A stretch of 64,000 bases of DNA from Macrostomum hystrix (lineage: Eukaryota > Animalia > Platyhelminthes). The notes beneath the pieces were generated by a model. The model was given only the letters and a program-made list of their open reading frames with translations, made no database searches and had not been told where the DNA came from. Every line of letters starts with the position of its first letter. Positions within the stretch are counted from its first letter, which is position 1. This document shows positions 7,677 through 32,319 of this stretch, piece by piece. The stretch spans positions 15,500,001-15,564,000 of the forward strand of contig CATNEN010000038.1 in assembly GCA_950097015.1 (NCBI GenBank), read 5' to 3'. The translations under genes and the position numbers were made by a program.

Positions 7677-10600
7677 ATGATGATGCTGCTGCCGCTGCTG
7701 CTGTGGCAGCCCATTGCGGCTCAGAACTGTCCGTCCAACTGGCTGTCCTTCGGTCGCTTCTGCTACCGAGCGCTCTACGGTCCGGGCAAGAACTTCACCG
7801 AGGCCAGAGCGGCCTGTCGCGGCCTGGGAGCTGACCTGCTGTGGCTGGAGTCGCAGGAAGAGCTGGACTGGGCCTTCGGTCAGAACCGATTCGGCATCAG
7901 GAGCAACTGGGGCGAGTGCGGCAGCGACTGCGGCTCGACCTACTCGGGCTGGATCGGCCTGCACAGGACAGGAGCGGATTTGACTGGCACTGCGGCCGTT
8001 GACAAGGCGAGGAACTCGGAGTGGGTCTGGCTGAGAGACGGCAGTCCCACGAGTCTGAGATTGTGAGTAATAACTGGTAAATGCTTTAATTATGGAAGTC
8101 CATACATTATAATATAGAATTAAAAATTACTGACGCAATGCGGATCTTTATATTCAAAATTCATTCTTCATGTCTTGCTCTAAATGTTTCCCTAGGACTA
8201 AGATTCGAACTCTCGACCTCTCGGTCAAAATCCTGAAGCTCTAACCACTTGTAGTACACTCCATTCAGCCTAATTAGTGAAATTATATATTAAGTAAAAA
8301 GGGCCCTGACATTCGCGTCTACCGTGCATGGCAACTTTCATGTCTCTGGCGCTGCCTAGTAAGGCTTTAATAGATTTTTATGAGCTGCAATAAGTGATGT
8401 CAAGAAAGTATGTTTGATATGTCGATAGTCTATTTCAATGTAAATCAACAAGACAAAGTAAACATTTAAGCAGAAATTATACTCGTAGCTCGTATCTGAA
8501 TATTTCAGCTCGTGGTACTTTGGATACCCAAAGCCCAGTCCCGAAGACTTCGTTTCAATGACGGAGGCCACCTTGCCATCAAGGATCAGGACGGACGAAA
8601 AGACGGACAAAATGTTTCCCATTTGCAAGATGGACCCGGATGCCAACCGAGGCCCCTGCCCGTCAGAGCAGTGGCTGCAGTTCAGCGGGTTCTGCTACCT
8701 GCTGGTCAAGGGAGCCAACGGAAGGACCCTCTCTGAGGCTGTGCGAGACTGCCAGAGTCGAGACAGGTCAGCTCACCTGCTGTGGGTCACCAGTCAGGCT
8801 GAGATGGACTGGGTCACGGACTACTCAGCGAGGAATTGGAGACTCAAAGAGGACTACAGAGCTCAGTGCACGGACTGCAGGTCTCAGGGAGACGCAGCCT
8901 GGACTGGACTCTTCAGAGACGTGTCCGACGGAGGCAAGCTGAAGTGGCTGAAGGACAACTCGAGCGTCAGTGTCACACTGTGAGTGTGGTTGCTGAGGAT
9001 AATCGAATGCATCTGGAAATTCATTGCAGAATAATGAACTTTTACATAATAATATTTTCATTAGGACTGTGGCCACGTCATTCCCCTGAACACACTCATG
9101 AACACAGGTGTGTACATCTGCCACTGACTTTCTCATCGTCAGCAGCGTACACACTCTCACCATATGCCATGGAGGTTGACACCCAAGACGAAGTTGCATA
9201 GCAAGCCCGCAAGCATTCTCTTTGTGGCTGCAAATGAATGTGGCCTCACGGCGGATTCGAGTTCAGGAGCCTTAGTGAGAGAGGAAAATGCGTCAAACGC
9301 GCTTTCATTCACCCCAGTGAAACCTGTACAAGTCTCAGAATTTGAAACTGCATCGACGAATGTGCTCATTCTAAATTTCTTTTTGAACTGTACTTTGCCT
9401 GAATCCGCCTGAAATCTCTATTTGATGGTTTGTGAAATGTCTTCCTGGAATAGAAATTGTTCCAGCACAACACAAGCTGCTGAGAAATCCCGTTTCGACA
9501 TTTATAATGCTGTATTAGTCTCCTTACTAAAACATCAATAGTTTTAATATTATCTTCTGCCTGTGTGTTGCTGCAGCAACTGGTTTGGCAGCGGCCCGAG
9601 CGACTCACCAGCGGACCACGGCTACCTGTTTGATTCGGGCTCCGCATTGTACTGGAGGACATTCCAGTCCAATGCGAAGCATTTTCACCTGTGTAAGGCA
9701 CCTGTGTTCGTGGCAACGACTTCACCTGATGTCATCACAGTGCCGTCTACGATTCCGGAGCTGAGGACTTCAACTGAGTTTACAACTGTCACAACTCTGG
9801 TGCCAACAACTACTACGGAAGTTCCTCGGGGCCCCTGCCCGTCAGAGCAGTGGCTGCAGTTCAGCGGGTTCTGCTACCTGCTGGTCAAGGGAGCCAACGG
9901 AAGGACCCTCTCTGAGGCTGTGCTAGACTGCCAGAGTCGAGACAGGTCAGCTCACCTGCTGTGGGTCACCAGTCAGGCTGAGATGGACTGGGTCATGGAC
10001 AATTCGGCGAGGAACTGGAGACTCAGAGAGGACTACAGAGCTCAGTGCACGGACTGCAGGTACTTAGGAGACGCAGCCTGGACTGGACTCTTCAGAGACG
10101 TGTCGGACGGAGGCAAGCTGAAGTGGCTGAAGGACAACTCAAGCGTCAGCGTCAGTGTGTGAGTTTACTGCCTTCATGATATTAATTTGAAGATCAAGAT
10201 AAGCTAAGAAAAGAAATCTTCTGCGTAATATAAGCAGAAAAAATGTTTAATATTAACAAAATTAGATAGGTGATGAGTTAAGCTGGCGTATCATGGCTCT
10301 GTTACCTCTTAATGAAAGTGTTTTTATGAGTCTGAAAATATCATTAATCACCCTAGCCAGATGATTCTAGCATGTGAAGCACCGGCCAAGTTATGATTTT
10401 TCTTTGAACTTCAGGCCATGGTATTTTATCGGCGAACCGGCAGCGACTCCAAGAGACTACGGCTACATTTATCAAGTGACAACAGGTGCTTTGTACTGGA
10501 GGACATACACGCCAAGCGCAAAGCACTACCACTTTTGCAAGGCTCCGATTTTCGTTGCAACAACTGGAACGACTGTAATAACGACTACAACCATCACAAC

Positions 10601-12587
10601 AACACCACAAACTACAAAGACCACAACTACTGAACCAACAACTACTGAACCAACAACTGCTGAACCAACAACTGCTGAACCAACGACTATTGAACCAACA
10701 ACTACTGAACCAATAACGGCTGAATCGACAACTACTGAACCAACAACTGCTGAACCATCGACTGCTGAACTAACAACTACTGAACCAACAACTACTGAAC
10801 CAACAACTACTGAACCAACAACTACTGAACCAACAACTACTGAACCAACAACTACTGAACCAACAACTACTGAACCAACAACTGCTGAACCAACAACTTC
10901 TGAACCAACAACTACTGAACCAACAACTACTGAACCAACAACTGCTGAACCAACAACTACTGAACCAACAACTGCTGAACCAACAACTACTGAACCAACA
11001 ACTACTGAACCAACAACTTCTGAACCAACAACTACTGAACCAACAACTACTGAACCAACAACTGCTGAACCAACAACTACTGAACCAACAACTACTGAAC
11101 CAACAACTACTGAACCAACAACTGCTGAACCAACAACTACTGAACCAACAACTACTGAACCAACAACTACTGAACCAACGACTGCTGAACCAACAACTAC
11201 TGAACCAACAACTGCTGAACCAACAACTACTGAACCAACAACTACTGAACCAACAACTACTGAACAAACAACTGCTGAACCAACGACTATTGAACCAACA
11301 ACTACTGAACCAACAATGGCTGAATCGACAACTACTGAACCAACAACTACTGAACCAACAACTACTGAACCAACAACTGCTGAACCAACAACTTCTGAAC
11401 CAACAACTACTGAACCAACAACTACTGAACCAACAACTGCTGAACCAACAACTACTGAACCAACAACTGCTGAACCAACAACTACTGAACCAACAACTAC
11501 TGAACCAACAACTGCTGAACCAACAACTACTGAACCAACAACTACTGAACCAACAACTGCTGAACCAACAACTACTGAACCAACAACTACTGAACCAACA
11601 ACTACTGAACCAACAACTACTGAACCAACAACTACTGAACCAACAACTATTGAACCAACAACTACTGAACCAACAACTACAGAACCAACAACTATTGAAC
11701 CAACAACTACTGAACCAACAACTGCTGAACCAACGACTATTGAACCAACAACTACTGAACCAACAACTGCTGAACCAACGACTATTGAACCAACAACTAC
11801 TGAACCAACAACTACTGAGGTGACAACTACTAAAGCTTCAACCACTCAAGTGACATCTTCAGCTCTAACGGCTACTCATTCTACAAATACTGAATCCCCA
11901 CCCAGCGTGCCATTGACTCCTGAAGCGACACCTACTGCGCCAGTGACTCCTGAAGTGACACTCTCTACGCCATCAACTCCTGGAGTGACACTCTCTACGC
12001 CATTAACTCCTGAAGTGACACCCTCTACGCCATCAACTCCTGAAGTGACACTCTCTACGCCATTAACTCCTGAAGTGACACCCTCTACGCCATCAACTCC
12101 TGAAGTGACACTCTCTACGCCATCAACTCCTGGAGTGACACTCTCTACGCCATCAACTCCTGAAGTGACACCCTCTACGTTATCAACTACTGAAGTGACA
12201 CTCTCTACGCCAGTGACTCCTGAAGTGACATCAAGACAGTCAAGTCCGTTGATTTCATCGATGACTTCTGCTTCACCTACAGATTTTGTGAGCACGGATG
12301 TCACCAGCGCCGGTCTGACAGAACCGGGCGGTGGATTCCCAATAATCTACGTCCACATCATCTGGCTCAGCTCGGTTGTGGCTGTTGGCGCTGCAGTTGT
12401 GGCCGCTGTGTTGTACTTTAAATTTCACGCCGCGGCTCAGGCTGGAGCCGCATCAGCCGCCAGTGCGGCGAACGGCGGATATCTGGACGATGAGAGTCAC
12501 GTGATGCGCAACGGATTTTCCAACATTCAGTTGGACACTGTGTCAGTTCCCATGGAGTCTTCTGGCGTTGAAACTAGTACCATATGA
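7677..12587 (+). CDS. Type I membrane protein: signal peptide, 3 atypical C-type lectin domains, EPTTT mucin stalk, TM, cytoplasmic tail (lectin gene 1)
   Basis: Exons 7677-8062, 8509-8979, 9577-10158, 10415-12587, all GT-AG phase 2. Signal MMMLLPLLLWQPIAAQ. CTLD motifs CPxxW..F..CY, WIGL/WTGL and final CK. TM IIYVHIIWLSSVVAVGAAVVAAVLYF. A likely 5'UTR intron at 7621-7665 removes the ATG at 7629. Confidence 0.9.
8190..8252 (-). mobile_element. Degenerate tRNA-derived SINE head fragment (duplicated at about 18645 and 25416; similar fragments near 4080 and 13670)
   Basis: Minus strand reads AGTGGTTAGAGC...GAGAGTTCGAATC (A/B boxes). No complete cloverleaf. Confidence 0.5.
9060..9305 (-). mobile_element. 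tRNA-derived SINE, family B, in lectin intron
   Basis: Reverse complement matches head and core of 52515-52850 (CTGACGATGAGAAAGTCAG..GCAGATGTACACACCTGTG). Copies at 19500, 20686, 26271, 27457 and 28650. Confidence 0.8.
10622..11820 (+). repeat. Coding 15-bp repeat (EPTTT/EPTTA), about 80 copies, mucin stalk
   Basis: GAACCAACAACTACT tandem, in frame within exon 4 of lectin gene 1. Confidence 0.95.
11910..12230 (+). repeat. Coding 30-bp repeat (PSTPEVTLST), about 10 copies
   Basis: In-frame tandem before the TM. Confidence 0.9.
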
Positions 12588-13200
12588 TGGATGCTCTGTG
12601 ATGCAAAGCGCTGTAAAGTTGCATTGTTATTTTACTTCTTTGTATTCTCATTTTTAATCTCTTAACTTGTCTTTTTGACTTGTCTCAGCCAATTGGTATA
12701 CCTTTTTAACTTTGTATTCGTCACAAGTGAGTTAAAATTCGTCAGTGTATTCAAAACTACTTCGTGTGTTTTCCATGTGTGAACTCTAATATTGACAGGA
12801 ATGATAAACATTTGGTTCACGATAAAGCCATTTTATAAAGCGATTTTTACAAACCTGAAGTTAAAAAGCTATACTAAGTATCAATACCTGTCTTAGGAGA
12901 AAATGAACTTTTATAAACTAAGATGTTCTGCAATGGAAATTGTCAGAAAAGTTAAATGTGAGAATTAAGTTTCAAGTTGATTTTGTCTCTCCTTAAATAA
13001 GAATCTATTAAACTCCACTGATAATTATTCCATTTCATATCGAATATAAACACCTGTAATATGTTCGCTTAATGAACCTTACGTAAAGTTCTGTTTAAAG
13101 CTCGGGTTAAGCGATTTTGTGTGTCCGGAAAGTATTAATATTTGTTTTTTTAGCTCCGCTGTTTTATTAGATATACTAACAAATAAAAGTAACTGCTCTT

Positions 13201-13568
13201 CAGTATAACAAGTGGCTATCCAGTATAACAAGTGGCTATCCAGTATAACAAGTGGCTATCCAGTATAACAAGTGGCTATCCAGTATAACAAGTGGCTATC
13301 CAGTATAACAAGTGGCTATCCAGTATAACAAGTGGCTATCCAGTATAACAAGTGGCTATCCAGTATAACAAGTGGCTATCCATTATAACAAGTGGCTATC
13401 CTGTATAACAAGTGGCTATCCATTATAACAAGTGGCTATCCAGTATAACAAGTGGCCATCCAGTATAACAAGTGGCTATCCAGTATAACAAGTGGCTATC
13501 CAGTAGAACAAGTGGCTATCCAGTATAACAAGTGGCTATCCAGTATAACAAGTGGCTATCCTATAACG
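13201..13568. repeat. 20-bp minisatellite (CAGTATAACAAGTGGCTATC) x18
   Basis: Direct tandem copies. Confidence 0.97.
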
Positions 13569-14029
13569 AGTGCCATTATATGAACTCCCTTCGCACACAA
13601 GCTCAAGTACCTGTGCTACAAAGTTTTCATCGTCTCGGGGGTTGGGCGTCCCTAAAATGAAAGTGGTGTTGTCGCGGATTCGAACACATGACCTCGGTGC
13701 CATAGACAAACGCTATAGCTTTGCCACTCGCACCAGAATAACATGCAAAAGTAAGAGTAACACATTATCTGAGTCTAATATGTAATTTCTATTTTTTAAG
13801 AAAACGAATTTGTATATAGAAGATAAGAATTGAAGGCATGAAACTCAATGATTGACAAAAGTCAAAGCCAGTCAAAGTAGTTTTTTCTAATTAATTGCAG
13901 AGTTAAATGGCTTCAAAAATATCTTATCTTGATGCTCAAGAAACAGACGAAAATATAGAAGCTAATTCACTGGACTTTTCTATATTCAAAATTTGAAGTC
14001 TAAAATCTCTTGGAGGGCAGCATTTTTAA

Positions 14030-16970
14030 ATGCTCTGTTCTTTTAGTAGAGTTCCACGCGGCGATCTCTGCTGCTTTGTCTTGTTGGTCTGGTTGGTTCT
14101 CGTTAACCAATCGGAGCCATCCAACACTCGGTGCGGATCTGCCCATCCGGATCAGCTTGACCAATCGGAGCCGTCCAACACTCGGTGCGGATCTGCCCAT
14201 CCGGATCAGCTTGGCCAATCGGAGCCGTCCAACACTCGGTGCGGATCTGCCCATCCGGATCAGCTTGACCAATCGGAGCCGTCCAACACTCGGTGCGGAT
14301 CTGCCCATCCGGATCAGCTTGACCAATCGGAGCCGTCCAACACTCGGTGCGGATCTGCCCATCCGGATCAGCTTGACCAATCGGAGCCGTCCAACACTCG
14401 GTGCGGATCCGCCCATCCGGATCAGGTTGATCCAATCGAAATCGCTGTCGTTCGCCAATCCACTGTCTCTGATATCACCGTGGACTGGCTGCCACCAGAC
14501 TACGCGGCAGTCTGGCCTTATTATTTCATCTTAACCTGCCAGAACTGTCCAATCAGACAGGCCAATACAACGGAGGAGACGTATAGATTTTCAGGTCTCA
14601 GAGCTGCGTCTGAGTATGCAGTGTCAGTTCAGGCTGGCCATGCGCGTTGCCGGCCTAGTCCAGCCTATGCACTGATTGGCAGGACAGGTAGGATACCTTC
14701 ACTTCATTTGGTGACCCGCACTGCCTATTTCGCTGACTCCTGAGCACACACGCACACAGATACTGTATGCAGGCACACGCTCGCACAGGTGTGTTCATCT
14801 GCTATAACTTTCTCATCGTCAGGCAGTGTACACTTTCACTAAGCTTTGGAGGTTGGCTCTTAAGGGTATAAGTTGCACGACAAGCCCCCAAGCTATCTTT
14901 GTGATCATAAAAATATGCCGATAACGCGTTTTATTGGAATACTTTGACTAATTTGACAAAATAAGTAAGAAGTGACACTGCTCTATACCATTTGCCAGCG
15001 CTGAGCAATCTACGGGGACCGTTGAGGATCTCAAACGTCAATGAGACAGGTTTCACAGTCAGCTGGACCGCATCGCCAGATGCGAACATTCTATACGAGG
15101 TCTCCTGCGCCAAGGCTCTAGTCGACCAGCCAACGGCTCGATGCGAGGGTCTTCAGTCTGGTGCCAGAATCGAGTTCACAGTCACAACGGTAAAGACAGG
15201 ATTTCTAAATTCTAATTTCGTCTATGGCAGAGCACTTACAGGTAATTTCTAGATTGTCCTCAGGTTGCATATTTTCGCTGGCTCTAGAACTTTAGTCGTA
15301 AAAAATTCGGCCTTTCAGATCTCTTTGCTGTCAATGTGAGTCGTGTAGAACTCACGATTCTCGATACGGCCATCCACGTGTCCTGGACTCCCTCCGACAC
15401 AGCTGGCGTCTTATATCAGTTGACCTGCAGATGCTTCGGCAGCAATAGTGATGTCATCAGTGTGACATCAGTTGTCCCAATGGCAACTTGCGACCAACTG
15501 AGCACTGGACAAGCTTACAAACTGACCGTGGCTGTAAAGAAAGACGGCTTCAGGGATGCCGTCACTGATCTAGGCGTTTGGCATGCTGGTAAGTACACGT
15601 ACTCTGCAGCCGTGCTTTGGATATTTCTTATTTACTGCATACACTTGTAATCGAAGCAATAGTGCCATACTCAAAATGAATTAAGGAGCAACGACTAAAC
15701 AGACTACAAAGCTAGCTACCATTGACTACACGACTAAAAAATTTACTTATGGAACAAAAACTGAACACGTTGGTGATGGAACAACAACCGAAGCTTCAAC
15801 AACAGAAGCTCCAACAACAGAAGGACCAACGAGAGAAGCTTCAACAACTGAAGCTCTAACAACAGAAGCTTCAACAACAGATGGACCAACAACTGAAGCC
15901 CCAACAACAGAGGCTCCAACAACTGACGGACCAACAACAGAAGCTTCAACAACAGATGGACCAACAACTGAAGCCCCAACAACAGAGGCTCCAACAACTG
16001 ACGGACCAACAACAGAAGCTTCAACAACAGAAGGACCAACGAGAGAAGCTCCAACAACTGACGGACCAACCAAAGAAGCTCCAACTACAGAAGCTTCAAC
16101 AACAGACAGACCAGCAACCGAAGCTTCAACAACAGAAGCTCCAACAACAGAAGGACCAACGAGAGAAGCTCCAGCTACTGAAGCTCTATCGACAGAAGCT
16201 TCAACAACAGACGGACCAACCACAGAAGCTTCAACAACAGAAGATCCAGCAACAGAAGATCCACCAACAAAAGATCCAGCAACAGAAAATCCAGCAACAA
16301 AAGATCCAGCAACAGAAGCTTCAACCACAGAACCTTCAACAACAGAAGCTTCAACAACAGAAGCTCCAGCAACGGAATCTAGCACTTCTGGCACAGCAAC
16401 CACAACGGACGGAAGCCGAGGCCCCTGCCCGTCAGAGCAGTGGCTGCAGTTCAGCGGGTTCTGCTACCTGCTGGTCAAGGGAACCAACGGAAGGAACCTC
16501 TCTGAGGCTGTGCGAGACTGCCAGAGTCGAGACAGGTCAGCTCACCTGCTGTGGGTCACCAGTCAGGCTGAGATGGACTGGGTCACGGACTACTCAGCGA
16601 GGAATTGGACACTGAGACAGGACTACAGAGCTCAGTGCACGGACTGCAGGTTTCAGGGAGACGCAGCCTGGACTGGACTCTTCAGAGACGTGTCGGACGG
16701 AGGCAAGCTGAAGTGGCTGAGGGACAACTCAAGCGTCAGTGTCAGAGTGTGAGTAGTCCTGGAAACAGATTTGTGTTATCCCCGATGTGCTCTGAAACGC
16801 AAACGCATGAGAAGCCCCGAACCCACCGCCGCAGACCGTGGCTCATCGGTCCCAGCCTGTCGCCAAGCAACTTCGGCTTCCTGTTTGACGCACCGCGAGA
16901 GCTGCTGTGGCGGACCTACCAGCCCGAGGCGCGCCACTTCCACCTGTGCAAGGTCCCGGGTAACAACTGA
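14030..16970 (+). CDS. Lectin locus 2, 5' part: signal peptide, 6x18-aa Cys repeat, 3 FN3 domains, mucin, CTLD (N-half + D-type C-half)
   Basis: Exons 14030-14687, 14999-15241, 15319-15588 (phase 1; FN3 motifs ITVDW..YRFSGL..Y.V.V, TVSW, VSWTP), 15686-16748 (mucin + CTLD N-half), then 16835 to stop at 16970, or to a phase-1 donor after 16959. Confidence 0.82.
14107..14436 (+). repeat. Coding 54-bp repeat x6 (QSEPSNTRCGSAHPDQLD)
   Basis: Near-perfect tandem between the signal peptide and the first FN3. Confidence 0.95.
14705..14905 (-). mobile_element. SINE family B, headless partial copy
   Basis: Reverse complement aligns with 52620-52830. Confidence 0.75.
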
Positions 16971-17334
16971 TCACCAAGGGGGTGCAGGTGGGACGGTCGG
17001 GCGCTTGTCTTCAAAGAGCTTAAAACAATACTTCACTGGATCTTTGTTCCTCAAATATAAAATTATAAAGTTTTCTTGATGAGACTTCTATTGACTACTA
17101 TGTGCACTTTCTGTAAAGTGCTTATGTACCAATCTTCATGCAAGTTTCTTTACTTTTTCTTTTCTGATTTGCAAAGGCTTTCTAATATAATTTCAGATTA
17201 TTTTGTGTTGTTTGAATTGTCTAGATGTTAAGGCAGCCTTGACCCAGACCTGAGCAAGCAGTTCGCTTGAGTTAGATCTGCAGCAACTTGGTTTAAGGGG
17301 CTTAATAACCAGCGTAGGTTGATTTGTCTTCAGC

Positions 17335-18010
17335 AGGTAGAATCCTCAGGTAAAATTTTGGTAGGAATTGAATCATCAGGTAGGAATGGAATCATCAGGT
17401 AGGAATGGAATCATCAGGTAGGAATGGAATCATCAGGTAGGAATGGAATCATCAGATAGGAATGGAATCATCAGGTAGGAATGGAATCATCAGGTAGGAA
17501 TGGAATCATCAGGTAGGAATGGAATCATCAGGTAGGAATGGAATCATCAGGTAGGAATGGAATCATCAGGTAGGAATGGAATCATCAGGCAGGAATAGAA
17601 TCATCAGGTAGGAATGGAATCATCAGGTAGGAATGGAATCATCAGGTAGGAATGGAATCATCAGGTAGGAATGGAATCATCAGGTAGGAATGGAATCATC
17701 AGGTAGGAATGGAATCATCAGGTAGGAATGGAATCATCAGGTAGGAATGGAATCATCAGGAAGGAATGGAATCATCAGGTAGGAATGGAATCATCAGGTA
17801 GGAATGGAATCATCAGGTAGGAATGGAATCATCAGGTAGGAATGGAATCATCAGGTAGGAATGGAATCATCAGGTAGGAATGGAATCATCAGGTAGGAAT
17901 GGAATCATCAGGTAGGAATGGAATCATCAGGTAGGAATGGAATCATCAGGTAGGAATGGAATCATCAGGTAGGAATGGAATCATCAGGTAGGAATGGATT
18001 CTTTCGGTAG
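17335..18010. repeat. 19-bp minisatellite (GGTAGGAATGGAATCATCA)n
   Basis: Direct tandem; duplicated at 24106-24781. Confidence 0.97.
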
Positions 18011-18949: not shown

Positions 18950-21900
18950 CTCGTGGTACTTTGGCTACCCAAAGCCCAGTCCCGAAAACTTCGTTTCAAT
19001 GACGGAGGCCACCCTGCCGTCAAGGATCAGGACGGATAAAAAGACGGACAAAATGTTTCCCATTTGCAAGATGGACCCGGATGCCAGCCGAGGCCCCTGC
19101 CCGTCAGAGCAGTGGCTGCAGTTCAGCGGGTTCTGCTACCTGCTGGTCAAGGGAGCCAACGGAAGGACCCTCTCTGAGGCTGTGCTAGACTGCCAGAGTC
19201 GAGACAGGTCAGCTCACCTGCTGTGGGTCACCAGTCAGGCTGAGATGGACTGGGTCACGGACTACTCAGCGAGGAACTGGAGACTCAGAGAGGACTACAG
19301 AGCTCAGTGCACGGACTGCAGGTTTCAGGGAGACGCAGCCTGGACTGGACTCTTCAGAGACGTGTCGGACGGAGGCAAGCTGAAGTGGCTGAGGGACAAC
19401 TCAAGCGTCAGCGTCAGTGTGTGTGTGGTTTCTGAGGATAATCGAATGCATCTGAAAATTCATTGCAATAGAATGAACTTTTACATAATAATATTTTTAT
19501 AAGGACTGTGGGCACGTCACTCGCCTGAACACACTCATGCACACAGGTGTGTACATCTGCCACTGACTTTCTCATCGTCAGACGTCAGCAGCGTACACAC
19601 TCTCACCATATGCCATGGAGGTTGGCACTCCAAGACGAAGTTGCAAAGCAGCCCGCAAGCATTCTCTTTGTGGCTGCAAATGAATGTGGCCTCACCGCGG
19701 ATTCGAGTTCAGGAGCCTTAGTGAGAGAGGAAAATGCGTCAAACGCGCTTTCATTCACCCCAGTGAAACCTGTACAAGTCTCAGAATTTGAAACTGCATC
19801 GACGAATGTGCTCATTCTAAATTTCTTTTTGAACTGTACTTTGCCTGAATCCGCCTGAAATCTCTATTTGATGGTTTGTGAAATGTCTTCCTGGAATAGA
19901 AATTGTTCCAGCACAACACAATCTGCTGAGAAATCCCGTTTTGACATTTATAATGCTGTATTAGTCTCCTTACTAAAACATCAATAGTTTTAATATTATC
20001 TTCTGCCTGTGTGTTGCTGCAGCAACTGGTTTGGCAGCGGCCCGAGCGACTCACCAGCGGACCACGGCTACCTGTTTGATTCGGGCTCCGCATTGTACTG
20101 GAGGACATTCCAGTCCAATGCGAAGCATTTTCACCTGTGTAAGGCACCTGTGTTCGTGGCAACGACTTCACCTGATGTCATCACAGTGCCGTCTACGATT
20201 CCGGAGCTGAGGACTTCAACTGAGTTTACAACTGTCACAACTCTGGTGCCAACAACTACTACGGAAGTTCCTCGGGGCCCCTGCCCGTCAGAGCAGTGGC
20301 TGCAGTTCAGCGGGTTCTGCTACCTGCTGGTCAATGGAACCAACGGAAGGACCCTCTCTGAGGCTGTGCTAGACTGCCAGAGTCGAGACAGGTCAGCTCA
20401 CCTGCTGTGGGTCACCAGTCAGGCTGAGATGGCCTGGGTCACGGACTACTCAGCGAGGAATTGGAGACTCAAAGAGGACTACAGAGCTCAGTGCACGGAC
20501 TGCAGGTCTCAGGGAGACGCAGCCTGGACTGGACTCTTCAGAGACGTGTCCGACGGAGGCAAGCTGAAGTGGCTGAAGGACAACTCGAGCGTCAGTGTCA
20601 CACTGTGAGTGTGGTTGCTGAGGATAATCGAATGCATCTGGAAATTCATTGCAGAATAATGAACTTTTACATAATAATATTTTCATTAGGACTGTGGCCA
20701 CGTCATTCCCCTGAACACACTCATGAACACAGGTGTGTACATCTGCCACTGACTTTCTCATCGTCAGACCTCAGCAGCGTACACACTCTCACCATATGCC
20801 ATGGAGGTTGGCACCCAAGACGAAGTTGCAAAGCAAGCCCGCAAGCATTCTCTTTGTGGCTGCAAATGAATGTGGCCTCACCGCGGATTCGAGTTCAGGA
20901 GCCTTAGTGAGAGAGGAAAATGCGTCAAACGCGCTTTCATTCACCCCAGTGAAACCTGTACAAGTCTCAGAATTTGAAACTGCATCGACGAATGTGCTCA
21001 TTCTAAATTTCTTTTTGAACTGTACTTTGCCTGAATCCGCCTGAAATCTCTATTTGATGGTTTGTGAAATGTCTTCCTGGAATAGAAATTGTTCCAGCAC
21101 AACACAATCTGCTGAGAAATCCCGTTTTGACATTTATAATGCTGTATTAGTCTCCTTACTAAAACATCAATAGTTTTAATATTATCTTCTGCCTGTGTGT
21201 TGCTGCAGCAACTGGTTTGGCAGCGGCCCGAGCGACTCACCAGCGGACCACGGCTACCTGTTTGATTCGGGCTCCGCATTGTACTGGAGGACATTCCAGT
21301 CCAATGCGAAGCATTTTCACCTGTGTAAGGCACCTGTGTTCGTGGCAACGACTTCACCTGATGTCATCACAGTGCCGTCTACGATTCCGGAGCTGAGGAC
21401 TTCAACTGAGTTTACAACTGTCACAACTCTGGTGCCAACAACTACTACGGAAGTTCCTCGGGGCCCCTGCCCGTCAGAGCAGTGGCTGCAGTTCAGCGGG
21501 TTCTGCTACCTGCTGGTCAAGGGAACCAACGGAAGGACCCTCTCTGAGGCTGTGCGAGACTGCCAGAGTCGAGACAGGTCAGCTCACCTGCTGTGGGTCA
21601 CCAGTCAGGCTGAGATGGACTGGGTCATGGACAATTCGGCGAGGAACTGGAGACTCAGAGAGGACTACAGAGCTCAGTGCACGGACTGCAGGACCCTAGC
21701 AGACGCAGCCTGGATTGGACTCTTCAGAGACGTGTCGGACGGAGGCAAGCTGAAGTGGCTGAAGGACAACTCTAGCGTCAGCGTCAGTGTGTGAGTTTAC
21801 TGCCTTCATGATATTAATTTGAAGATCAAGAAGATAAGCTAAGAAAAGAAATCTTCTGCGTAATATAAGCAGAAAAAATGTTTATTATTAACAAAATTAG

Positions 21901-23741
21901 ATAGGTGAGTTAAGCTGGTGCATCATGGCTCTGTTACCTCTTAATGAAAGTGTTTTTATGAGTCTGAAAATATCTTTAATCACCCTAGCCAGATGATTCT
22001 AGCATGTGAAGCACCGGCCAAGTTATGATTTTTCTTTGCACTTCAGGCCATGGTATTTTATGTACGAACCGGCAGCGACTCCAAGAGACTTCGGCTACAT
22101 TTATCAAGTGACAACAGGTGCTTTGTACTGGAGGACATACACGCCAAGCGCAAAGCACTACCACTTTTGCAAGGCTCCGATTTTCATTGCAACAACTGGA
22201 ACGACTGTAATAACGACTACAACCATCACAACAACACCACAAACTACAAAGACCACAACTACTGAACCAACAACTGCTGAACCAACAACTGCTGAACCAA
22301 CAACTACTGAAGAAACAACTACTGAACCAACGACTGCTGAACCAACAACTGCTGAACCAACAACTACTGAACCAACAACTACTGAACCAACAACTACTGA
22401 AACAACAACTGCTGAACCAACAACTACTGAACCAACAACTGCTGAACCAACGACTATTGAACCAACAACTGCTGAACCAACAACTACTGAACCAACAACT
22501 ACTGAACCAACAACTGCTGAACCAACGACTATTGAACCAACAACTGCTGAACCAACGACTATTGAACCAACAACTGCTGAACCAACAACTACTGAACCAA
22601 CAACTACTGAACCAACAACTGCTGAACCAACAACTACTGAACCAACAACTACTGAACCAACAACTGCTGAACCAACAACTTCTGAACCAACAACTACTGA
22701 AACAACAACTGCTGAACCAACAACTACTGAACCAACAACTGCTGAACCAACGACTATTGAACCAACAACTGCTGAACCAACAACTTCTGAACCAACAACT
22801 ACTGAACTAACAACTGCTGAACCAACAACTACCGAACCAACAACTACTGAAACAACAACTGCTGAACCATCGACTACTGAACCAACAACTACTGAAACAA
22901 CAACTGCTGAACAAACAACTACTGAACCAACGACTGCTGAACAAACAACTGAAGCTCCAAAGACAGAATCTTCGACAACAGAAGATCCAAGAACAGAAGA
23001 TCTAGCAACAGAAGGTCCAGCAACAGAAGGTCCAGCAACAAAAGATCCAGCAACAGAAGGTCCAGCAACAAAAGATCGAGCAACAGAAGCTTCAACAACA
23101 GAACCTTCAACAACAGAAGCTTCAACAACAGAAGCTCCAGCAACGGAATCTAGCACTTCTGGCACAGCAACCACAACGGACGGAAGCCGAGGCCCCTGCC
23201 CGTCAGAGCAGTGGCTGCAGTTCAGCGGGTTCTGCTACCTGCTGGTCAAGGGAACCAACGGAAGGAACCTCTCTGAGGCTGTGCGAGACTGCCAGAGTCG
23301 AGACAGGTCAGCTCACCTGCTGTGGGTCACCAGTCAGGCTGAGATGGACTGGGTCACGGACTACTCAGCGAGGAATTGGACACTGAGACAGGACTACAGA
23401 GCTCAGTGCACGGACTGCAGGTTTCAGGGAGACGCAGCCTGGACTGGACTCTTCAGAGACGTGTCGGACGGAGGCAAGCTGAAGTGGCTGAGGGACAACT
23501 CAAGCGTCAGTGTCAGAGTGTGAGTAGTCCTGGAAACAGATTTGTGTTATCCCCGATGTGCTCTGAAACGCAAACGCATGAGAAGCCCCGAACCCACCGC
23601 CGCAGACCGTGGCTCATCGGTCCCAGCCTGTCGCCAAGCAACTTCGGCTTCCTGTTTGACGCACCGCGAGAGCTGCTGTGGCGGACCTACCAGCCCGAGG
23701 CGCGCCACTTCCACCTGTGCAAGGTCCCGGGTAACAACTGA
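18950..23741 (+). CDS. Lectin locus 2, cassette 1: CTLD exons A, B, B, C+mucin, D
   Basis: Phase 2-2 exons 18950-19420 (donor GTGTGT), 20023-20604, 21209-21790, 22047-23519, then D exon 23606-23741 (stop). All are open and homologous to gene 1 exons or D1. Confidence 0.8.
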
Positions 23742-24105
23742 TCACCAAGGGGGTGCAGGTGGGACGGTCGGGCGCTTGTCTTCAAAGAGCTTAAAACAAT
23801 ACTTCACTGGATCTTTGTTCCTCAAATATAAAATTATAAAGTTTTCTTGATGAGACTTCTATTGACTACTATGTGCACTTTCTGTAAAGTGCTTATGTAC
23901 CAATCTTCATGCAAGTTTCTTTACTTTTTCTTTTCTGATTTGCAAAGGCTTTCTAATATAATTTCAGATTATTTTGTGTTGTTTGAATTGTCTAGATGTT
24001 AAGGCAGCCTTGACCCAGACCTGAGCAAGCAGTTCGCTTGAGTTAGATCTGCAGCAACTTGGTTTAAGGGGCTTAATAACCAGCGTAGGTTGATTTGTCT
24101 TCAGC

Positions 24106-24781
24106 AGGTAGAATCCTCAGGTAAAATTTTGGTAGGAATTGAATCATCAGGTAGGAATGGAATCATCAGGTAGGAATGGAATCATCAGGTAGGAATGGAA
24201 TCATCAGGTAGGAATGGAATCATCAGATAGGAATGGAATCATCAGGTAGGAATGGAATCATCAGGTAGGAATGGAATCATCAGGTAGGAATGGAATCATC
24301 AGGTAGGAATGGAATCATCAGGTAGGAATGGAATCATCAGGTAGGAATGGAATCATCAGGCAGGAATAGAATCATCAGGTAGGAATGGAATCATCAGGTA
24401 GGAATGGAATCATCAGGTAGGAATGGAATCATCAGGTAGGAATGGAATCATCAGGTAGGAATGGAATCATCAGGTAGGAATGGAATCATCAGGTAGGAAT
24501 GGAATCATCAGGTAGGAATGGAATCATCAGGAAGGAATGGAATCATCAGGTAGGAATGGAATCATCAGGTAGGAATGGAATCATCAGGTAGGAATGGAAT
24601 CATCAGGTAGGAATGGAATCATCAGGTAGGAATGGAATCATCAGGTAGGAATGGAATCATCAGGTAGGAATGGAATCATCAGGTAGGAATGGAATCATCA
24701 GGTAGGAATGGAATCATCAGGTAGGAATGGAATCATCAGGTAGGAATGGAATCATCAGGTAGGAATGGATTCTTTCGGTAG
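24106..24781. repeat. 19-bp minisatellite, duplicate of 17335-18010
   Basis: Same unit and same variant positions. Confidence 0.97.
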
Positions 24782-25720
24782 GAATTAAAGCATTAGACAG
24801 GAATAAAAGCTTTAGACAGGAATAAAAGCTTTTTCAGGACTAGAATCCTTACGCTCGTAATCTTTCGTAATCGTTTTGAGTTCACTCTGTGAAGCTTCAG
24901 AAATAGGCTGCTCAAAAGAAAGCACCAATTTAATTACAGAGGCTCTCTTCTCACGCGCTAAAAAGAGGAGTCAATGAGACCAGGTCCAACCGTAAAAATG
25001 CTTATCAATACTTTCACGACTTCAGTCAGAAAAGTCTTCTGAGCAGGCATTTGAAAATTGAGCAGGCTCTTTTCTCTTGTACATGCCAGATTTGCGCTGT
25101 AGGCAAAGACTAACTATGAATCCTCGATTTCGACCACAGACAACAGAATGAAACAACTCCAATCGATTTCCCCGGAGAGTATGCTTAAAACACGTTGAAT
25201 TGAGGGAAATCAATTGGACTTAAGGGAATTCATTTGGACTTATCTATGGTCGAGAAGGCTGGTTGGGCCCTCGCTTTCGACTTCAGCTAATGGGGAAATC
25301 AATTGGCTTTTTTGCGAAATCAATTGAGAAAAGGTATATTAAAAATCACTGACGCAATGCGGATCTTCATACTCAAAATTCATTCTTCATGTCTTGCTCT
25401 AAATGTTTCCCTAGGACTAAGATTCGAACTCTCGACCTCTCGGTCAAAATCCTGAAGCTCTAACAACTTGTAGTACACTCCATTCAGCCTAATTAGTGAA
25501 ATTATATATTAAATAAAAAAGAGCCCTGACATTCGCGTCTACCGTGCATGGCAGCTTTCATGTCTCTGGCGCTGACTAGTAAGGCTTTGATAGGTTTTTA
25601 TGAGCTGCAATAAGTGATGTCAAGAAAGTATGTTTGCTATGTCGAAATAAATTTCAATGAAAAATAACAAGACAAAAAAAACATCCAAGCAGAAATTATA
25701 CTCGTATCTGAATACTTCAG

Positions 25721-28700
25721 CTCGTGGTACTTTGGCTACCCAAAGCCCAGTCCCGAAAACTTCGTTTCAATGACGGAGGCCACCCTGCCGTCAAGGATCA
25801 GGACGGATAAAAAGACGGACAAAATGTTTCCCATTTGCAAGATGGACCCGGATGCCAGCCGAGGCCCCTGCCCGTCAGAGCAGTGGCTGCAGTTCAGCGG
25901 GTTCTGCTACCTGCTGGTCAAGGGAGCCAACGGAAGGACCCTCTCTGAGGCTGTGCTAGACTGCCAGAGTCGAGACAGGTCAGCTCACCTGCTGTGGGTC
26001 ACCAGTCAGGCTGAGATGGACTGGGTCACGGACTACTCAGCGAGGAACTGGAGACTCAGAGAGGACTACAGAGCTCAGTGCACGGACTGCAGGTTTCAGG
26101 GAGACGCAGCCTGGACTGGACTCTTCAGAGACGTGTCGGACGGAGGCAAGCTGAAGTGGCTGAGGGACAACTCAAGCGTCAGCGTCAGTGTGTGTGTGGT
26201 TTCTGAGGATAATCGAATGCATCTGAAAATTCATTGCAATAGAATGAACTTTTACATAATAATATTTTTATAAGGACTGTGGGCACGTCACTCGCCTGAA
26301 CACACTCATGCACACAGGTGTGTACATCTGCCACTGACTTTCTCATCGTCAGACGTCAGCAGCGTACACACTCTCACCATATGCCATGGAGGTTGGCACT
26401 CCAAGACGAAGTTGCAAAGCAGCCCGCAAGCATTCTCTTTGTGGCTGCAAATGAATGTGGCCTCACCGCGGATTCGAGTTCAGGAGCCTTAGTGAGAGAG
26501 GAAAATGCGTCAAACGCGCTTTCATTCACCCCAGTGAAACCTGTACAAGTCTCAGAATTTGAAACTGCATCGACGAATGTGCTCATTCTAAATTTCTTTT
26601 TGAACTGTACTTTGCCTGAATCCGCCTGAAATCTCTATTTGATGGTTTGTGAAATGTCTTCCTGGAATAGAAATTGTTCCAGCACAACACAATCTGCTGA
26701 GAAATCCCGTTTTGACATTTATAATGCTGTATTAGTCTCCTTACTAAAACATCAATAGTTTTAATATTATCTTCTGCCTGTGTGTTGCTGCAGCAACTGG
26801 TTTGGCAGCGGCCCGAGCGACTCACCAGCGGACCACGGCTACCTGTTTGATTCGGGCTCCGCATTGTACTGGAGGACATTCCAGTCCAATGCGAAGCATT
26901 TTCACCTGTGTAAGGCACCTGTGTTCGTGGCAACGACTTCACCTGATGTCATCACAGTGCCGTCTACGATTCCGGAGCTGAGGACTTCAACTGAGTTTAC
27001 AACTGTCACAACTCTGGTGCCAACAACTACTACGGAAGTTCCTCGGGGCCCCTGCCCGTCAGAGCAGTGGCTGCAGTTCAGCGGGTTCTGCTACCTGCTG
27101 GTCAATGGAACCAACGGAAGGACCCTCTCTGAGGCTGTGCTAGACTGCCAGAGTCGAGACAGGTCAGCTCACCTGCTGTGGGTCACCAGTCAGGCTGAGA
27201 TGGCCTGGGTCACGGACTACTCAGCGAGGAATTGGAGACTCAAAGAGGACTACAGAGCTCAGTGCACGGACTGCAGGTCTCAGGGAGACGCAGCCTGGAC
27301 TGGACTCTTCAGAGACGTGTCCGACGGAGGCAAGCTGAAGTGGCTGAAGGACAACTCGAGCGTCAGTGTCACACTGTGAGTGTGGTTGCTGAGGATAATC
27401 GAATGCATCTGGAAATTCATTGCAGAATAATGAACTTTTACATAATAATATTTTCATTAGGACTGTGGCCACGTCATTCCCCTGAACACACTCATGAACA
27501 CAGGTGTGTACATCTGCCACTGACTTTCTCATCGTCAGACCTCAGCAGCGTACACACTCTCACCATATGCCATGGAGGTTGGCACCCAAGACGAAGTTGC
27601 AAAGCAAGCCCGCAAGCATTCTCTTTGTGGCTGCAAATGAATGTGGCCTCACCGCGGATTCGAGTTCAGGAGCCTTAGTGAGAGAGGAAAATGCGTCAAA
27701 CGCGCTTTCATTCACCCCAGTGAAACCTGTACAAGTCTCAGAATTTGAAACTGCATCGACGAATGTGCTCATTCTAAATTTCTTTTTGAACTGTACTTTG
27801 CCTGAATCCGCCTGAAATCTCATGGCTCTATTTGATGGTTTGTGAAATGTCTTCCTGGAATAGAAATTGTTCCAGCACAACACAAGCTGCTGAGAAATCC
27901 CGTTTCGACATATATAATGCTGTATTAGTCTCCTTACTAAAACGTCAATAGTTTTAATATTATCTTCTGCCTGTGTGTTGCTGCAGCAACTGGTTTGGCA
28001 GCGGCCCGAGCGACTCACCAGCGGACCACGGCTACCTGTTTGATTCGGGCTCCGCATTGTACTGGAGGACATTCCAGTCCAATGCGAAGCATTTTCACCT
28101 GTGTAAGGCACCTGTGTTCGTGGCAACGACTTCACCTGATGTCATCACAGTGCCGTCTACGATTCCGGAGCTGAGGACTTCAACTGAGTTTACAACTGTC
28201 ACAACTCTGGTGCCAACAACTACTACGGAAGTTCCTCGGGGCCCCTGCCCGTCAGAGCAGTGGCTGCAGTTCAGCGGGTTCTGCTACCTGCTGGTCAAGG
28301 GAACCAACGGAAGGACCCTCTCTGAGGCTGTGCGAGACTGCCAGAGTCGAGACAGGTCAGCTCACCTGCTGTGGGTCACCAGTCAGGCTGAGATGGACTG
28401 GGTCATGGACAATTCGGCGAGGAACTGGAGACTCAGAGAGGACTACAGAGCTCAGTGCACGGACTGCAGGAACTTAGGAGACGCAGCCTGGACTGGACTC
28501 TTCAGAGACGTGTCCGACGGAGGCAAGCTGAAGTGGCTGAAGGACAACTCGAGCGTCAGTGTCACACTGTGAGTGTGGTTGCTGAGGATAATCGAATGCA
28601 TCTGGAAATTCATTGCAGAATAATGAACTTTTAAATAATAATATTTTCATTAGGACTGTGGCCACGTCATTCCCCTGAACACACTCATGAACACAGGTGT

Positions 28701-31686
28701 GTACATCTGCCACTGACTTTCTCATCGTCAGCAGCGTACACACTCTCACCATATGCCATGGAGGTTGGCACCCAAGACGAAGTTGCAAAGCAAGCCCGCA
28801 AGCATTCTCTTTGTGGCTGCAAATGAATGTGGCCTCACGGCGGATTCGAGTTCAGGAGCCTTAGTGAGAGAGGAAAATGCGTCAAACGCGCTTTCATTCA
28901 CCCCAGTGAAACCTGTACAAGTCTCAGAATTTGAAACTGCATCGACGAATGTGCTCATTCTAAATTTCTTTTTGAACTGTACTTTGCCTGAATCCGCCTG
29001 AAATCTCTATTTGATGGTTTGTGAAATGTCTTCCTGGAATAGAAATTGTTCCAGCACAACACAATCTGCTGAGAAATCCCGTTTTGACATTTATAATGCT
29101 GTATTAGTCTCCTTACTAAAACATCAATAGTTTTAATATTATCTTCTGCCTGTGTGTTGCTGCAGCAACTGGTTTGGCAGCGGCCCGAGCGACTCACCAG
29201 CGGACCACGGCTACCTGTTTGATTCGGGCTCCGCATTGTACTGGAGGACATTCCAGTCCAATGCGAAGCATTTTCACCTGTGTAAGGCACCTGTGTTCGT
29301 GGCAACGACTTCACCTGATGTCATCACAGTGCCGTCTACGATTCCGGAGCTGAGGACTTCAACTGAGTTTACAACTGTCACAACTCTGGTGCCAACAACT
29401 ACTACGGAAGTTCCTCGGGGCCCCTGCCCGTCAGAGCAGTGGCTGCAGTTCAGCGGGTTCTGCTACCTGCTGGTCAAGGGAACCAACGGAAGGACCCTCT
29501 CTGAGGCTGTGCGAGACTGCCAGAGTCGAGACAGGTCAGCTCACCTGCTGTGGGTCACCAGTCAGGCTGAGATGGACTGGGTCATGGACAATTCGGCGAG
29601 GAACTGGAGACTCAGAGAGGACTACAGAGCTCAGTGCACGGACTGCAGGAACTTAGGAGACGCAGCCTGGACTGGACTCTTCAGAGACGTGTCCGACGGA
29701 GGCAAGCTGAAGTGGCTGAAGGACAACTCAAGCGTCAGCGTCAGTGTGTGAGTTTACTGCCTTCATGATATTAATTTGAAGATCAAGAAGATAAGCTAAG
29801 AAAAGAAATCTTCTGCGTAATATAAGCAGAAAAAATGTTTATTATTAACAAAATTAGATAGGTGAGTTAAGCTGGTGCATCATGGCTCTGTTACCTCTTA
29901 ATGAAAGTGTTTTTATGAGTCTGAAAATATCTTTAATCACCCTAGCCAGATGATTCTAGCATGTGAAGCACCGGCCAAGTTATGATTTTTCTTTGCACTT
30001 CAGGCCATGGTATTTTATGTACGAACCGGCAGCGACTCCAAGAGACTTCGGCTACATTTATCAAGTGACAACAGGTGCTTTGTACTGGAGGACATACACG
30101 CCAAGCGCAAAGCACTACCACTTTTGCAAGGCTCCGATTTTCATTGCAACAACTGGAACGACTGTAATAACGACTACAACCATCACAACAACACCACAAA
30201 CTACAAAGACCACAACTACTGAACCAACAACTGCTGAACCAACAACTGCTGAACCAACAACTACTGAAGAAACAACTACTGAACCAACGACTGCTGAACC
30301 AACAACTGCTGAACCAACAACTACTGAACCAACAACTACTGAACCAACAACTACTGAAACAACAACTGCTGAACCAACAACTACTGAACCAACAACTGCT
30401 GAACCAACGACTATTGAACCAACAACTGCTGAACCAACAACTACTGAACCAACAACTACTGAACCAACAACTGCTGAACCAACGACTATTGAACCAACAA
30501 CTGCTGAACCAACGACTATTGAACCAACAACTGCTGAACCAACAACTACTGAACCAACAACTACTGAACCAACAACTGCTGAACCAACAACTTCTGAACC
30601 AACAACTACTGAAACAACAACTGCTGAACCAACAACTACTGAACCAACAACTGCTGAACCAACGACTATTGAACCAACAACTGCTGAACCAACAACTTCT
30701 GAACCAACAACTACTGAACTAACAACTGCTGAACCAACAACTACCGAACCAACAACTACTGAAACAACAACTGCTGAACCATCGACTACTGAACCAACAA
30801 CTACTGAAACAACAACTGCTGAACAAACAACTACTGAACCAACGACTGCTGAACAAACAACTGAAGCTCCAAAGACAGAATCTTCGACAACAGAAGATCC
30901 AAGAACAGAAGATCTAGCAACAGAAGGTCCAGCAACAGAAGGTCCAGCAACAAAAGATCCAGCAACAGAAGGTCCAGCAACAAAAGATCGAGCAACAGAA
31001 GCTTCAACAACAGAACCTTCAACAACAGAAGCTTCAACAACAGAAGCTCCAGCAACGGAATCTAGCACTTCTGGCACAGCAACCACAACGGACGGAAGCC
31101 GAGGCCCCTGCCCGTCAGAGCAGTGGCTGCAGTTCAGCGGGTTCTGCTACCTGCTGGTCAAGGGAACCAACGGAAGGACCCTCTCTGAGGCTGTGCGAGA
31201 CTGCCAGAGTCGAGACAGGTCAGCTCACCTGCTGTGGGTCACCAGTCAGGCTGAGATGGACTGGGTCACGGACTACTCAGCGAGGAATTGGACACTGAGA
31301 CAGGACTACAGAGCTCAGTGCACGGACTGCAGGTTTCAGGGAGACGCAGCCTGGACTGGACTCTTCAGAGACGTGTCGGATGGAGGCAAGCTGAAGTGGC
31401 TGAGGGACAACTCAAGCGTCAGTGTCAGAGTGTGAGTAGTCCTGGAAACAGATTTGTGTTATCCCCGATGTGCTCTGAAACGCAAACGCATGAGAAGCCC
31501 CGAACCCACCGCCGCAGACCGTGGCTCATCGGTCCCAGCCTGTCGCCAAACAACTTCGGCTTCCTGTTTGACGCACCGCGAGAGCTGCTGTGGCGGACCT
31601 ACCAGCCCGAGGCGCGCCACTTCCACCTGTGCAAGGCCGTCGGGAGCCGCTGCGGGAGTCCCTCGCTGCGATTGAAGGAAGAATAG
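25721..31686 (+). CDS. Lectin locus 2, cassette 2: CTLD exons A, B, B, B, C+mucin, D
   Basis: Exons 25721-26191, 26794-27375, 27987-28568, 29166-29747, 30004-31431, and D from 31518 (in-frame stop at 31686 unless spliced). Confidence 0.8.
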
Positions 31687-31691
31687 GTCAG

Positions 31692-31834
31692 GTGCAGCGC
31701 AGCAACTGCAGCAGCAGCAGTTTAGCCTCCTGCCTTGGCTGCACCTCGTGCTTGCACTGCTGGCCGGCCTGGCGTGTTTGATCGCCTGCGGCATCTGGCG
31801 ATCTCGGCGTCGACTCGTGTCTCAGCCCGCCTAG
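31692..31834 (+). CDS. Probable terminal transmembrane exon of lectin locus 2
   Basis: Reads GAAQQLQQQQFSLLPWLHLVLALLAGLACLIACGIWRSRRRLVSQPA*: a hydrophobic span followed by a basic stop-transfer. Preceded by CAG (phase 1). It is in a different frame from the adjacent D exon, so the junction is unresolved. Confidence 0.6.
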
Positions 31835-32319
31835 AAATGCTCAAGTTAAACGAATGCTCATATCAGAAAAATATTCTTCTTTAATCTAACCCAAAATGAC
31901 TGAAAATTTCATACCGAAAAAATATTATTCAATTTGTTCTTTTACTTGTTGCAATAGATTCCGATAAAAATCTGGTGCTGTTTTTAATTTTTAAAGCGTT
32001 AATTTTTGTTAATGTCTTCCTTTTAACGATTGCCAATCTATACTTAGTTACACTAAATTCTATAATTTAGCAAGGTAGATTTTTATACGTAACTTTTTAA
32101 ATTATTTTCTTAGACACGAATTGAGAAAAATATCCCAAATATTTACTTATTGGTCTGCTTAGATCGAAAAGAATTTTAGTATTACAAAATTCAAAAATGT
32201 ACAACCACTCCTGCTGATTGACATGTTTACCAATTGTGATATGCTCAAAGTATCAGTACTGAAACTTTTCAAACAGAATTGAGTTCTTGAGTGTCATGTC
32301 CAGTATGTAGTCCTGTATA

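Follow-up and report, generated by a model that had tools for sequence, protein, structure and literature searches.

A 1992 report by Kim et al. in Genomics is said to have found that the exons of MRC1 do not coincide with the boundaries of its carbohydrate-recognition domains (CRDs). It is well known from vertebrates that an intron may isolate the sugar-binding, C-terminal portion of a CRD, and the CRD of CLEC4F is encoded by three exons (PMC6422238). In the half-Ig exon arrays of Dscam1, half a domain makes up the unit at the exon level, and it is in the binding half that variants differ; these variants are single-purpose, equal-size exons that lie between constitutive exons and are chosen by mutually exclusive splicing. 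In tandem immune and lectin families, region-limited gene conversion homogenizes one block among paralogs, and the adjacent block keeps old lineages. Our analysis concerns two neighboring genes of the flatworm Macrostomum hystrix, gene 1 (7629-12587) and gene 2 (from 14030), the latter followed by a long exon array, in a window of 64,000 nucleotides (assembly GCA_950097015.1, contig CATNEN010000038.1, positions 15,500,001 to 15,564,000 of the forward strand), which is the whole stretch of DNA analyzed and to which positions refer. Both genes encode C-type lectin-like domains (CTLDs), each split by an intron into an N-half and a C-half. We consider it likely that the genes encode Macrostomum-specific type I mucin-like multi-CTLD surface glycoproteins with an ancestral intradomain intron, that their N-halves have undergone concerted evolution, and that the array arose by very recent duplication.

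In contrast to the vertebrate multi-exon CRDs, each domain here has one intron, not two. The domains of the window also differ from vertebrate CTLD receptors in lacking the Ca2+-site residues, the C2-C3 disulfide, and a ricin or FN-II head. The layout of the mannose-receptor family (MRC1, PLA2R, DEC-205, and Endo180), with a ricin-type Cys-rich domain and an FN-II domain at the N-terminus ahead of 8-10 CTLDs, was not found, as gene 1 opens with a CTLD and gene 2 carries FN-III, not FN-II, domains plus a mucin part.

In both genes, every CTLD is interrupted by a GT..AG phase-2 intron one residue ahead of a conserved Trp. Each N-half ends two bases into a codon and is followed by GTGAGT (GTGTGT in two copies), and each C-half starts directly after AG, its first base completing the codon begun by the N-half. 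The internal exons are 471 nt (class A C-half with N-half, A-N), 582 nt (B-N), and 1473 or 1428 nt (C-mucin-N) long, all divisible by 3 and of phase 2-2. They consist of a C-half, a linker, and an N-half, and hence span a domain boundary. The window sequence holds twelve near-invariant N-halves (CPSEQWLQFSGFCY...KLKWL[KR]DNSSVSV) between 8657 and 31431, and one divergent copy.

8657, 9836, 16426, 19098, 20282, 21468, 23197, 25869, 27053, 28246, 29425, 31109, forward strand: starts of the twelve N-halves
7728, forward strand: start of the divergent first N-half (N0)

The twelve copies are 94-100% identical pairwise at the DNA level (mean 96.3%) and 91-100% at the protein level, with differences at 27 of 318 sites; three of the twelve are exact copies, owing to the identity of 16327-21047 with 23098-27818. 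The C-halves fall into four classes. Class A is 25-33% identical to B, C, and D, which share 40-55% identity with one another and have a common tail, ...L(Y)WRT..A(K/R)H.H.CK, so that the variable part of these C-halves is mainly the first ~22 residues. The class B C-half with its linker (283 nt; 9577-9859 and the starts of five other B exons) shows no difference among its six copies, whether from gene 1 or gene 2, and the N-halves attached to these identical B C-halves differ at 15-21 sites. The first-pass annotation of this DNA had described a phase-2 cut at the same point in every CTLD, phase-symmetric exons running from C-half through linker to N-half, a nearly invariant N-half in 12 copies, and four C-half classes. 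The donor and acceptor sequences together with RNA junctions, the exon lengths, the identities (three exact duplicates notwithstanding), and the outlying position of class A bear out each of these points. It had also claimed that any N-half donor can join any downstream C-half in frame, which phase arithmetic allows; such compatibility is generic for symmetric exons.

Comparison with Macrostomum lignano revealed different histories for the two halves. In the N-half tree, the 13 N-halves of this genome, namely the twelve of the window and that of a paralog ~950 kb upstream (L006; C38:14551401-14554718), form one clade (support 100/100) apart from five M. lignano N-halves, and N0 pairs with its M. 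lignano ortholog, not with the other N-halves. The C-halves instead group by class. Class A is 75-78% identical to M. lignano A and forms a joint clade with it (100/100), class D is 72% identical to M. lignano D (support 87/96), and class C is 55-60% identical to the C-like halves of M. lignano versus 40-45% to other classes, a relation that the tree of 40 columns does not resolve. Because the N-halves cluster by species and the C-halves by class, the homogenization is limited to the N-half. The homogenized block measures ~320 bp, from ..RGPCPSEQ to the splice donor, and the flanks beyond it are unalignable. At the level of sequence, this comparison establishes concerted evolution confined to the N-half as the source of the near-identity across exon types, both genes, and the paralog 950 kb away. 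Classes A and D predate the split from M. lignano and have stayed distinct, and class C probably has as well.

A divergent paralog, L013 (C5:3392500-3401500), is the ortholog of M. lignano P0001, has about eight CTLDs, and serves as a control. Its N-halves pair 1:1 by position with those of P0001 across species, with support of 90-100 for five of six pairs; the first-position pair was not resolved by the tree. Its exons follow the same plan: signal peptide with N-half, then units of C-half, linker, and N-half of ~180-195 codons, and finally a C-half with anchor and tail. The L013 donors are of phase 2 and lie at the same place as in the window genes. The intradomain intron is thus demonstrably an ancestral, family-wide trait, and since L013 has the same split, the exon design was not built for the array of gene 2.

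Homogenization probably proceeded by gene conversion or unequal crossing-over seeded in the common ~320-bp block; unequal crossing-over in the same block would also explain the 1,184-bp period of the cassettes and the identical B halves. The situation resembles the families with region-limited conversion in that one block is homogenized among paralogs and the adjacent block keeps old lineages. Unlike in those families, the homogenized block is half a structural domain whose 3' bound is a splice donor, and it is common to repeats within one gene, to a neighbor gene, and to a paralog 950 kb away. The locus therefore offers a clean, datable case of concerted evolution halting at a half-domain boundary, with a sister gene that escaped homogenization as its control.

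The best protein matches of the window are M. lignano proteins, with 43-63% identity, and a search of 1.8 billion proteins found the family only in Macrostomum. A further protein search with the A-N exon of gene 2 gave no match within the length range it covered, which says little about absence. The fused model P0033 (UniRef A0A1I8GUY7), which covers both genes, has the same architecture and the same order from gene 1 to gene 2. P0034 and P0035 are of the gene 1 type and agree with it domain for domain (signal peptide, N0+A, two further CTLDs, mucin, and anchor). P0003 (PAA68155.1) is of the gene 2 type, with three to four FN3 domains followed by one or more CTLDs ending in class D. Within M. 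lignano, the N-halves are near-identical as well, and P0002 and P0033 contain mis-predicted read-through exactly at the N|C boundary. M. lignano differs in having three CTLDs in gene 1 and one or two in gene 2, without an A-B-B-C-D array; there is no clear M. lignano ortholog of class B, and the N-halves are ~20-25% apart between the species.

Gene 1 consists of four exons.

7629-8062, forward strand: exon 1, signal peptide and N0, from an open reading frame and a partial Pfam match; phase-2 end ..AGA TT|GTGAGT
8509-8979, forward strand: exon 2, class A C-half, linker, and N-half; 471 nt, phase 2-2
9577-10158, forward strand: exon 3, class B C-half, Thr/Pro linker, and N-half; 582 nt, phase 2-2, with the N to B join present in an RNA contig
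10415-12587, forward strand: last exon, class C C-half, mucin-like repeats, transmembrane helix, cytoplasmic tail, and stop, from an open reading frame

Its domain order is accordingly signal peptide, CTLD (N0+A), CTLD (N+B), CTLD (N+C), mucin, transmembrane helix, and tail. Exon 1 is orthologous to residues 25-135 of M. lignano P0033, and the tail matches residues 820-905 of the same protein. The mucin part of ~1.5 kb contains ~80 TTEPT (15-bp) repeats and 30-bp repeats, with tandem repeats at 10623-11818 and 11909-12230. With a signal peptide at 7629, Ser/Thr/Pro repeats, a single helix, a tail, and a stop at 12587, gene 1 has the layout of a membrane-tethered mucin-like protein, and its product is predicted to be an O-glycosylated, mucin-like glycoprotein.

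Transcription was assessed with Logan contigs from four small runs, compared on 18030-22250. The runs contain RNA, since coverage is limited to exons with GT..AG joints. The contigs join exon 1 to A, the loose end at the A acceptor being equal to 8033-8062; they join N to B at 20023, the exact predicted acceptor; and they join N to C at 22047 with GT..AG ends and gene 1 variants. Contigs of high depth join N to D, and their flanks (..TTTNGRRGIC|PSEQ.. and ..SSVTISV|PWLI) assign them to L006. In the A exon, all six listed RNA variants match the gene 1 copy, not the gene 2 copy; in the C exon, five differences between gene 1 and gene 2 match gene 1 (two listed by place, with the count agreeing). 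Gene 1 is an intact, transcribed gene in which splicing connects each N-half with the C-half that follows. No array-private variant was present in the RNA contigs of the four runs, every copy-specific variant being that of gene 1 or L006, and no genuine junction between non-neighboring exons was found in them, with the proviso that low-level skipping could escape contigs.

Three signals in these contigs were examined and rejected. In a joint from 19420 to 22047, which apparently skips 2626 nt, the 48-nt side mismatches once at 19420 and agrees fully with the donor ends at 10158 and 29747; the five gene 1 variants are present on the C side of the joint. A joint that goes back 582 nt, from 20604 to 20023, was not accepted as a real splice, the B start being identical in six copies. 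Both joints arise from short sides of 48 nt that were misplaced because the N-halves are nearly identical. Low-depth contigs at 18313-18570 match a dispersed repeat present in at least 30 copies and were not accepted as an exon.

The first-pass annotation had proposed that the locus yields a combinatorial receptor repertoire, in which regulated exon skipping joins the constant N-half to alternative downstream C-halves and produces many isoforms. This proposal draws on real features. All internal exons are of phase 2-2, so every skip stays in frame; the C-half classes are least alike in the loop region, where classical CTLDs bind their ligand; and the D and A acceptors of gene 2 follow the same donor. 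However, the RNA contigs show neighboring junctions only, the apparent skip being a misplacement, the array copies are without RNA support, and the array carries stops and a frameshift. Since the N-half is constant, a join of any N-half to a later C-half only recreates the domain to which that C-half belongs and deletes the domains between. Skipping would vary the number of domains only, and the kinds of domain remain four, without new specificity. The same exon design occurs in L013, whose N-halves are divergent and orthologous 1:1; it is therefore ancestral rather than an adaptation for shuffling. Nor is there a cluster of alternative exons between constitutive exons. Dscam1 and the window genes both have exons built on half a domain and variants that differ in the half that binds; the exons of the window also carry the N-half of the next domain and are used in series, and in the RNA contigs each N-half leads into the C-half that follows, with no sign of an exclusive choice. 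We therefore regard a combinatorial receptor as very unlikely. The N-half, seen in the first-pass annotation as a constant scaffold for shuffling, owes its constancy to concerted evolution and recent duplication. Phase-symmetric half-domain exons with a "constant" half resemble a diversity generator; at this locus, an inherited intron, gene conversion, and very recent duplication account for them.

Gene 2 and its array comprise the following features.

14030-16748 (approximate bounds), forward strand: gene 2 5' part, with signal peptide, 54-bp coding repeat in six copies, three FN-III exons, and a mucin exon ending in an N-half, from Pfam fn3 and tblastn with P0003 and P0033
~14372-14734, 14986-15255, 15312-15584, forward strand: FN-III exons, from Pfam fn3
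16426-16748, forward strand: first N-half of gene 2, with its donor at 16748
16835-16970, forward strand: D1, a class D C-half whose acceptor lies 86 nt past the donor, with a stop at VPGNN*
16971-18949, forward strand: spacer between D1 and the first A exon of the array, with unit-specific sequence, a 19-bp minisatellite at 17360-18014, and a dispersed-repeat end at 18296-18566
18950-19420 (A-N), 20023-20604 (B-N), 21209-21790 (B-N), 22047-23519 (C-mucin-N), forward strand: array unit 1, all exons of phase 2-2
23606-23741, forward strand: D2, identical to D1 throughout, stop included
25721-26191 (A-N), 26794-27375 (B-N), 27987-28568 (B-N), 29166-29747 (B-N), 30004-31431 (C-mucin-N), forward strand: array unit 2
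31518-31834, forward strand: D3 and the remnant of a membrane anchor, with a stop at 31684-31686 (..RLKEE*) and the transmembrane and tail coding out of frame

Array unit 1 is, introns included, 94-99% identical to the gene 1 cassettes, and the mucin repeat of its C exon runs into a copy of the gene 2 mucin-N exon, which is followed by D2. Unit 2 has one additional B-N cassette compared with unit 1 and ends in D3. Between the array and gene 1, introns differ by 0.8-5.8% and exons by 0-5%. As the introns are as similar as the exons, the cassettes are recent duplicates of whole segments. In the spacer, homology to gene 1 intron 1 begins at 18567, and the dispersed-repeat end is placed exactly where it starts, i.e., at the breakpoint. 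The array has a periodicity of 1,184 bp (the B-N cassette) and of 6.8-8 kb (the units), with breakpoints in the N-half and in mucin repeats. The earlier claim that unequal crossing-over reshapes the array is upheld by these two periods as a statement about germline history. Copies of the gene 1 cassettes lacking exon 1 were probably fused via mucin repeats, beside a transposon end, to copies of the gene 2 3' end. The fused unit would then have been duplicated again, making the long gene 2 array a very recent rearrangement. Copy number at the locus probably varies between worms.

The segments 16327-21047 and 23098-27818, 4,721 bp each, show zero differences, including in a 655-bp minisatellite with a 19-bp unit. 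Such identity indicates either a very recent duplication or an assembly artefact. In the latter case, the assembly would, in a region rich in repeats, have falsely placed one unit, or two haplotypes, in tandem, and this would account for all or part of the gene 2 array. A minisatellite of 655 bp would be expected to change fast, and the units are bounded by mucin and minisatellite repeats, both of which fit an artefact. On the other hand, the window is without Ns and lies mid-contig at 15.5 Mb in an assembly of 42 contigs; the units differ at their ends and by the extra B-N cassette, and D3 has private deletions. Moreover, a perfect recent duplication accounts for the identity equally well. 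We consider an artefact doubtful and favor a recent duplication in the genome.

The class D exons bear on whether the array is used. In L006, an intact single-CTLD paralog composed of FN3, a short mucin, N+D, and an in-frame anchor, the D exon reads on in frame through the transmembrane helix. The homology of D1 to this exon ceases right after ..HLCK. The candidate donors past D1 are of phase 0 or 1 and the A acceptor is of phase 2, and D1 therefore cannot continue in frame into the A exon. Alignment with L006 showed a 10-nt and a 1-nt deletion in D3, which put its anchor (to 31834) out of frame. With stops in the D exons and a frameshift ahead of the anchor in the last of them, the array is probably either silent or in decay, and the gene 2 product, if made at all, is likely a short secreted FN3-mucin-CTLD protein ending at D1.

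Gene 2 may alternatively be a working long gene, in which D1 and D2 are skipped or serve as alternative terminal exons, so that it yields the short secreted form as well as an FN3-mucin secreted protein of about eleven CTLDs ending at D3. The joins from N 16426 to A 18950 and from N 23197 to A 25721 are in frame, and the array exons all keep open frames and intact splice sites. However, the D acceptor lies 86 nt from the donor versus 2.2 kb for A, and the contigs revealed no array-specific RNA. The A C-half would have to join an N-half other than its own, as its natural partner N0 is absent: no N0-like exon occurs in the spacer or anywhere in the array. The units are so young that open frames tell little about selection, and the D3 anchor is out of frame. 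A working long gene is thus quite unlikely.

The assignment of the domains was based on several comparisons. A family profile matched almost only CTLDs in PDB (CD302 with E=1.8e-7, snaclecs, NKG2, and LOX-1), with CEL-I aligned over the whole domain. Among ESM-Atlas neighbors, 28 of 30 carry Lectin_C, and UniRef labels the M. lignano homologs as CTLD proteins. The threshold of Pfam Lectin_C (PF00059) was not reached. The window domains were scanned exon by exon, as half-domains; gene 1 exon 1 gave a partial match of 20.9 bits against a cut-off of 22.6 (E=6e-4), and there was no Lectin_C match in the other half-domain exons or in the full-length M. lignano homologs P0001 and P0007. The sequence nevertheless contains the CTLD motifs CPSEQW..FCY (C0, C0'), ..DCQ (C1), AAWTGL (WIGL), and ..LCK (C4), lacks the C2-C3 cysteine pair, and has an extra CTDC pair. 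On these motifs and profiles, we classify the domains as divergent long-form CTLDs.

In the alignment with CD302, WIGL is followed by the 'W.(D)..s' strand, and the intron comes after this strand, one residue ahead of the conserved Trp in the 'W..G.P' segment. By standard CTLD topology, the C-half would hold the second part of the long-loop region and beta3-beta5. At the EPN position the C-halves have YPK, GPS, EPA, or PSL, and at the WND position RTD or WRT; neither EPN/QPD nor WND is present. Classical Ca2+-dependent sugar binding appears unlikely because the Ca2+/sugar-site residues and the C2-C3 disulfide are absent.

Four observations weigh against the interpretation of the locus that we favor. 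In the N-half, 15 of 22 variable codons differ non-synonymously, and codons 76-78 form a hot spot; this could mean more than neutral drift. AlphaFold2 with a 12-row alignment of the single-domain homolog P0007 gave a mean predicted local distance difference test (pLDDT) score of 42.6, too poor for a fold search. The C-half tree, based on 40 columns only, did not resolve classes B and C. Finally, contigs drop rare isoforms and cannot separate identical copies.

A further-reaching scheme can be drawn from the same data. Rather than being a by-product of repeats, the homogenization of the N-half may be maintained by selection in at least two Macrostomum species, so that every domain of gene 1, of gene 2, and of the distant paralog keeps the same scaffold or interaction face; the old C-half classes A, C, and D and the small patch at codons 76-78 would carry specificity. 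The shared block would drive rapid gain and loss of cassettes between individuals, and in gene 2, competition between the D and A acceptors for a single donor would bring about a switch between a short and a long multi-domain form. We consider this scheme unlikely as a whole. A literature search on Macrostomum CTLD genes returned only unrelated adhesive proteins, and expression and localization data for the family would be new biology, of specialist interest.

Several minor observations were made on these genes and their surroundings. Codons 76-78 of the N-half (e.g., 8882-8890 and 10061-10069) form a hypervariable patch, CR[FSYTN][QL][GA]D, just ahead of the WIGL strand; one site shows five different codons, and the CRFQGD and CRNLGD variants are present in M. 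lignano too. In gene 2, the 54-bp tandem repeat at 14106-14438 (6.1 copies, 97% matches) lies in the coding start and encodes the in-frame 18-residue unit SEPSNTRCGSAHPDQLDQ, which forms the mature N-terminus right after the signal peptide. Contigs of L006 have by far the greatest depth of the family in the RNA runs. L013 shows a recent internal duplication of its own, 2212-3383 being about the same as 4332-5365, and an array similar to L013 is located at C1:1.266-1.279 Mb.

The intronic segments 19540-19581 and 20709-20849 coincide with very deep RNA contigs (hundreds to thousands) that have unrelated flanks; these are probably short repeat or low-complexity matches to abundant transcripts from elsewhere. 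The dispersed-repeat end at 18296-18566 recurs at 25067-25337; the repeat is young and has at least 30 genomic copies of 96-99% identity, often as inverted pairs 250-600 bp apart, and resembles a miniature inverted-repeat transposable element. Minisatellite arrays with units of 14-90 bp and up to 130 copies occupy introns and intergenic DNA at 1-3978, 13201-13572, 32319-34964, and 40204-55025. The 3' ends of gene 1, D1, and D3 are each adjoined by a different minisatellite.

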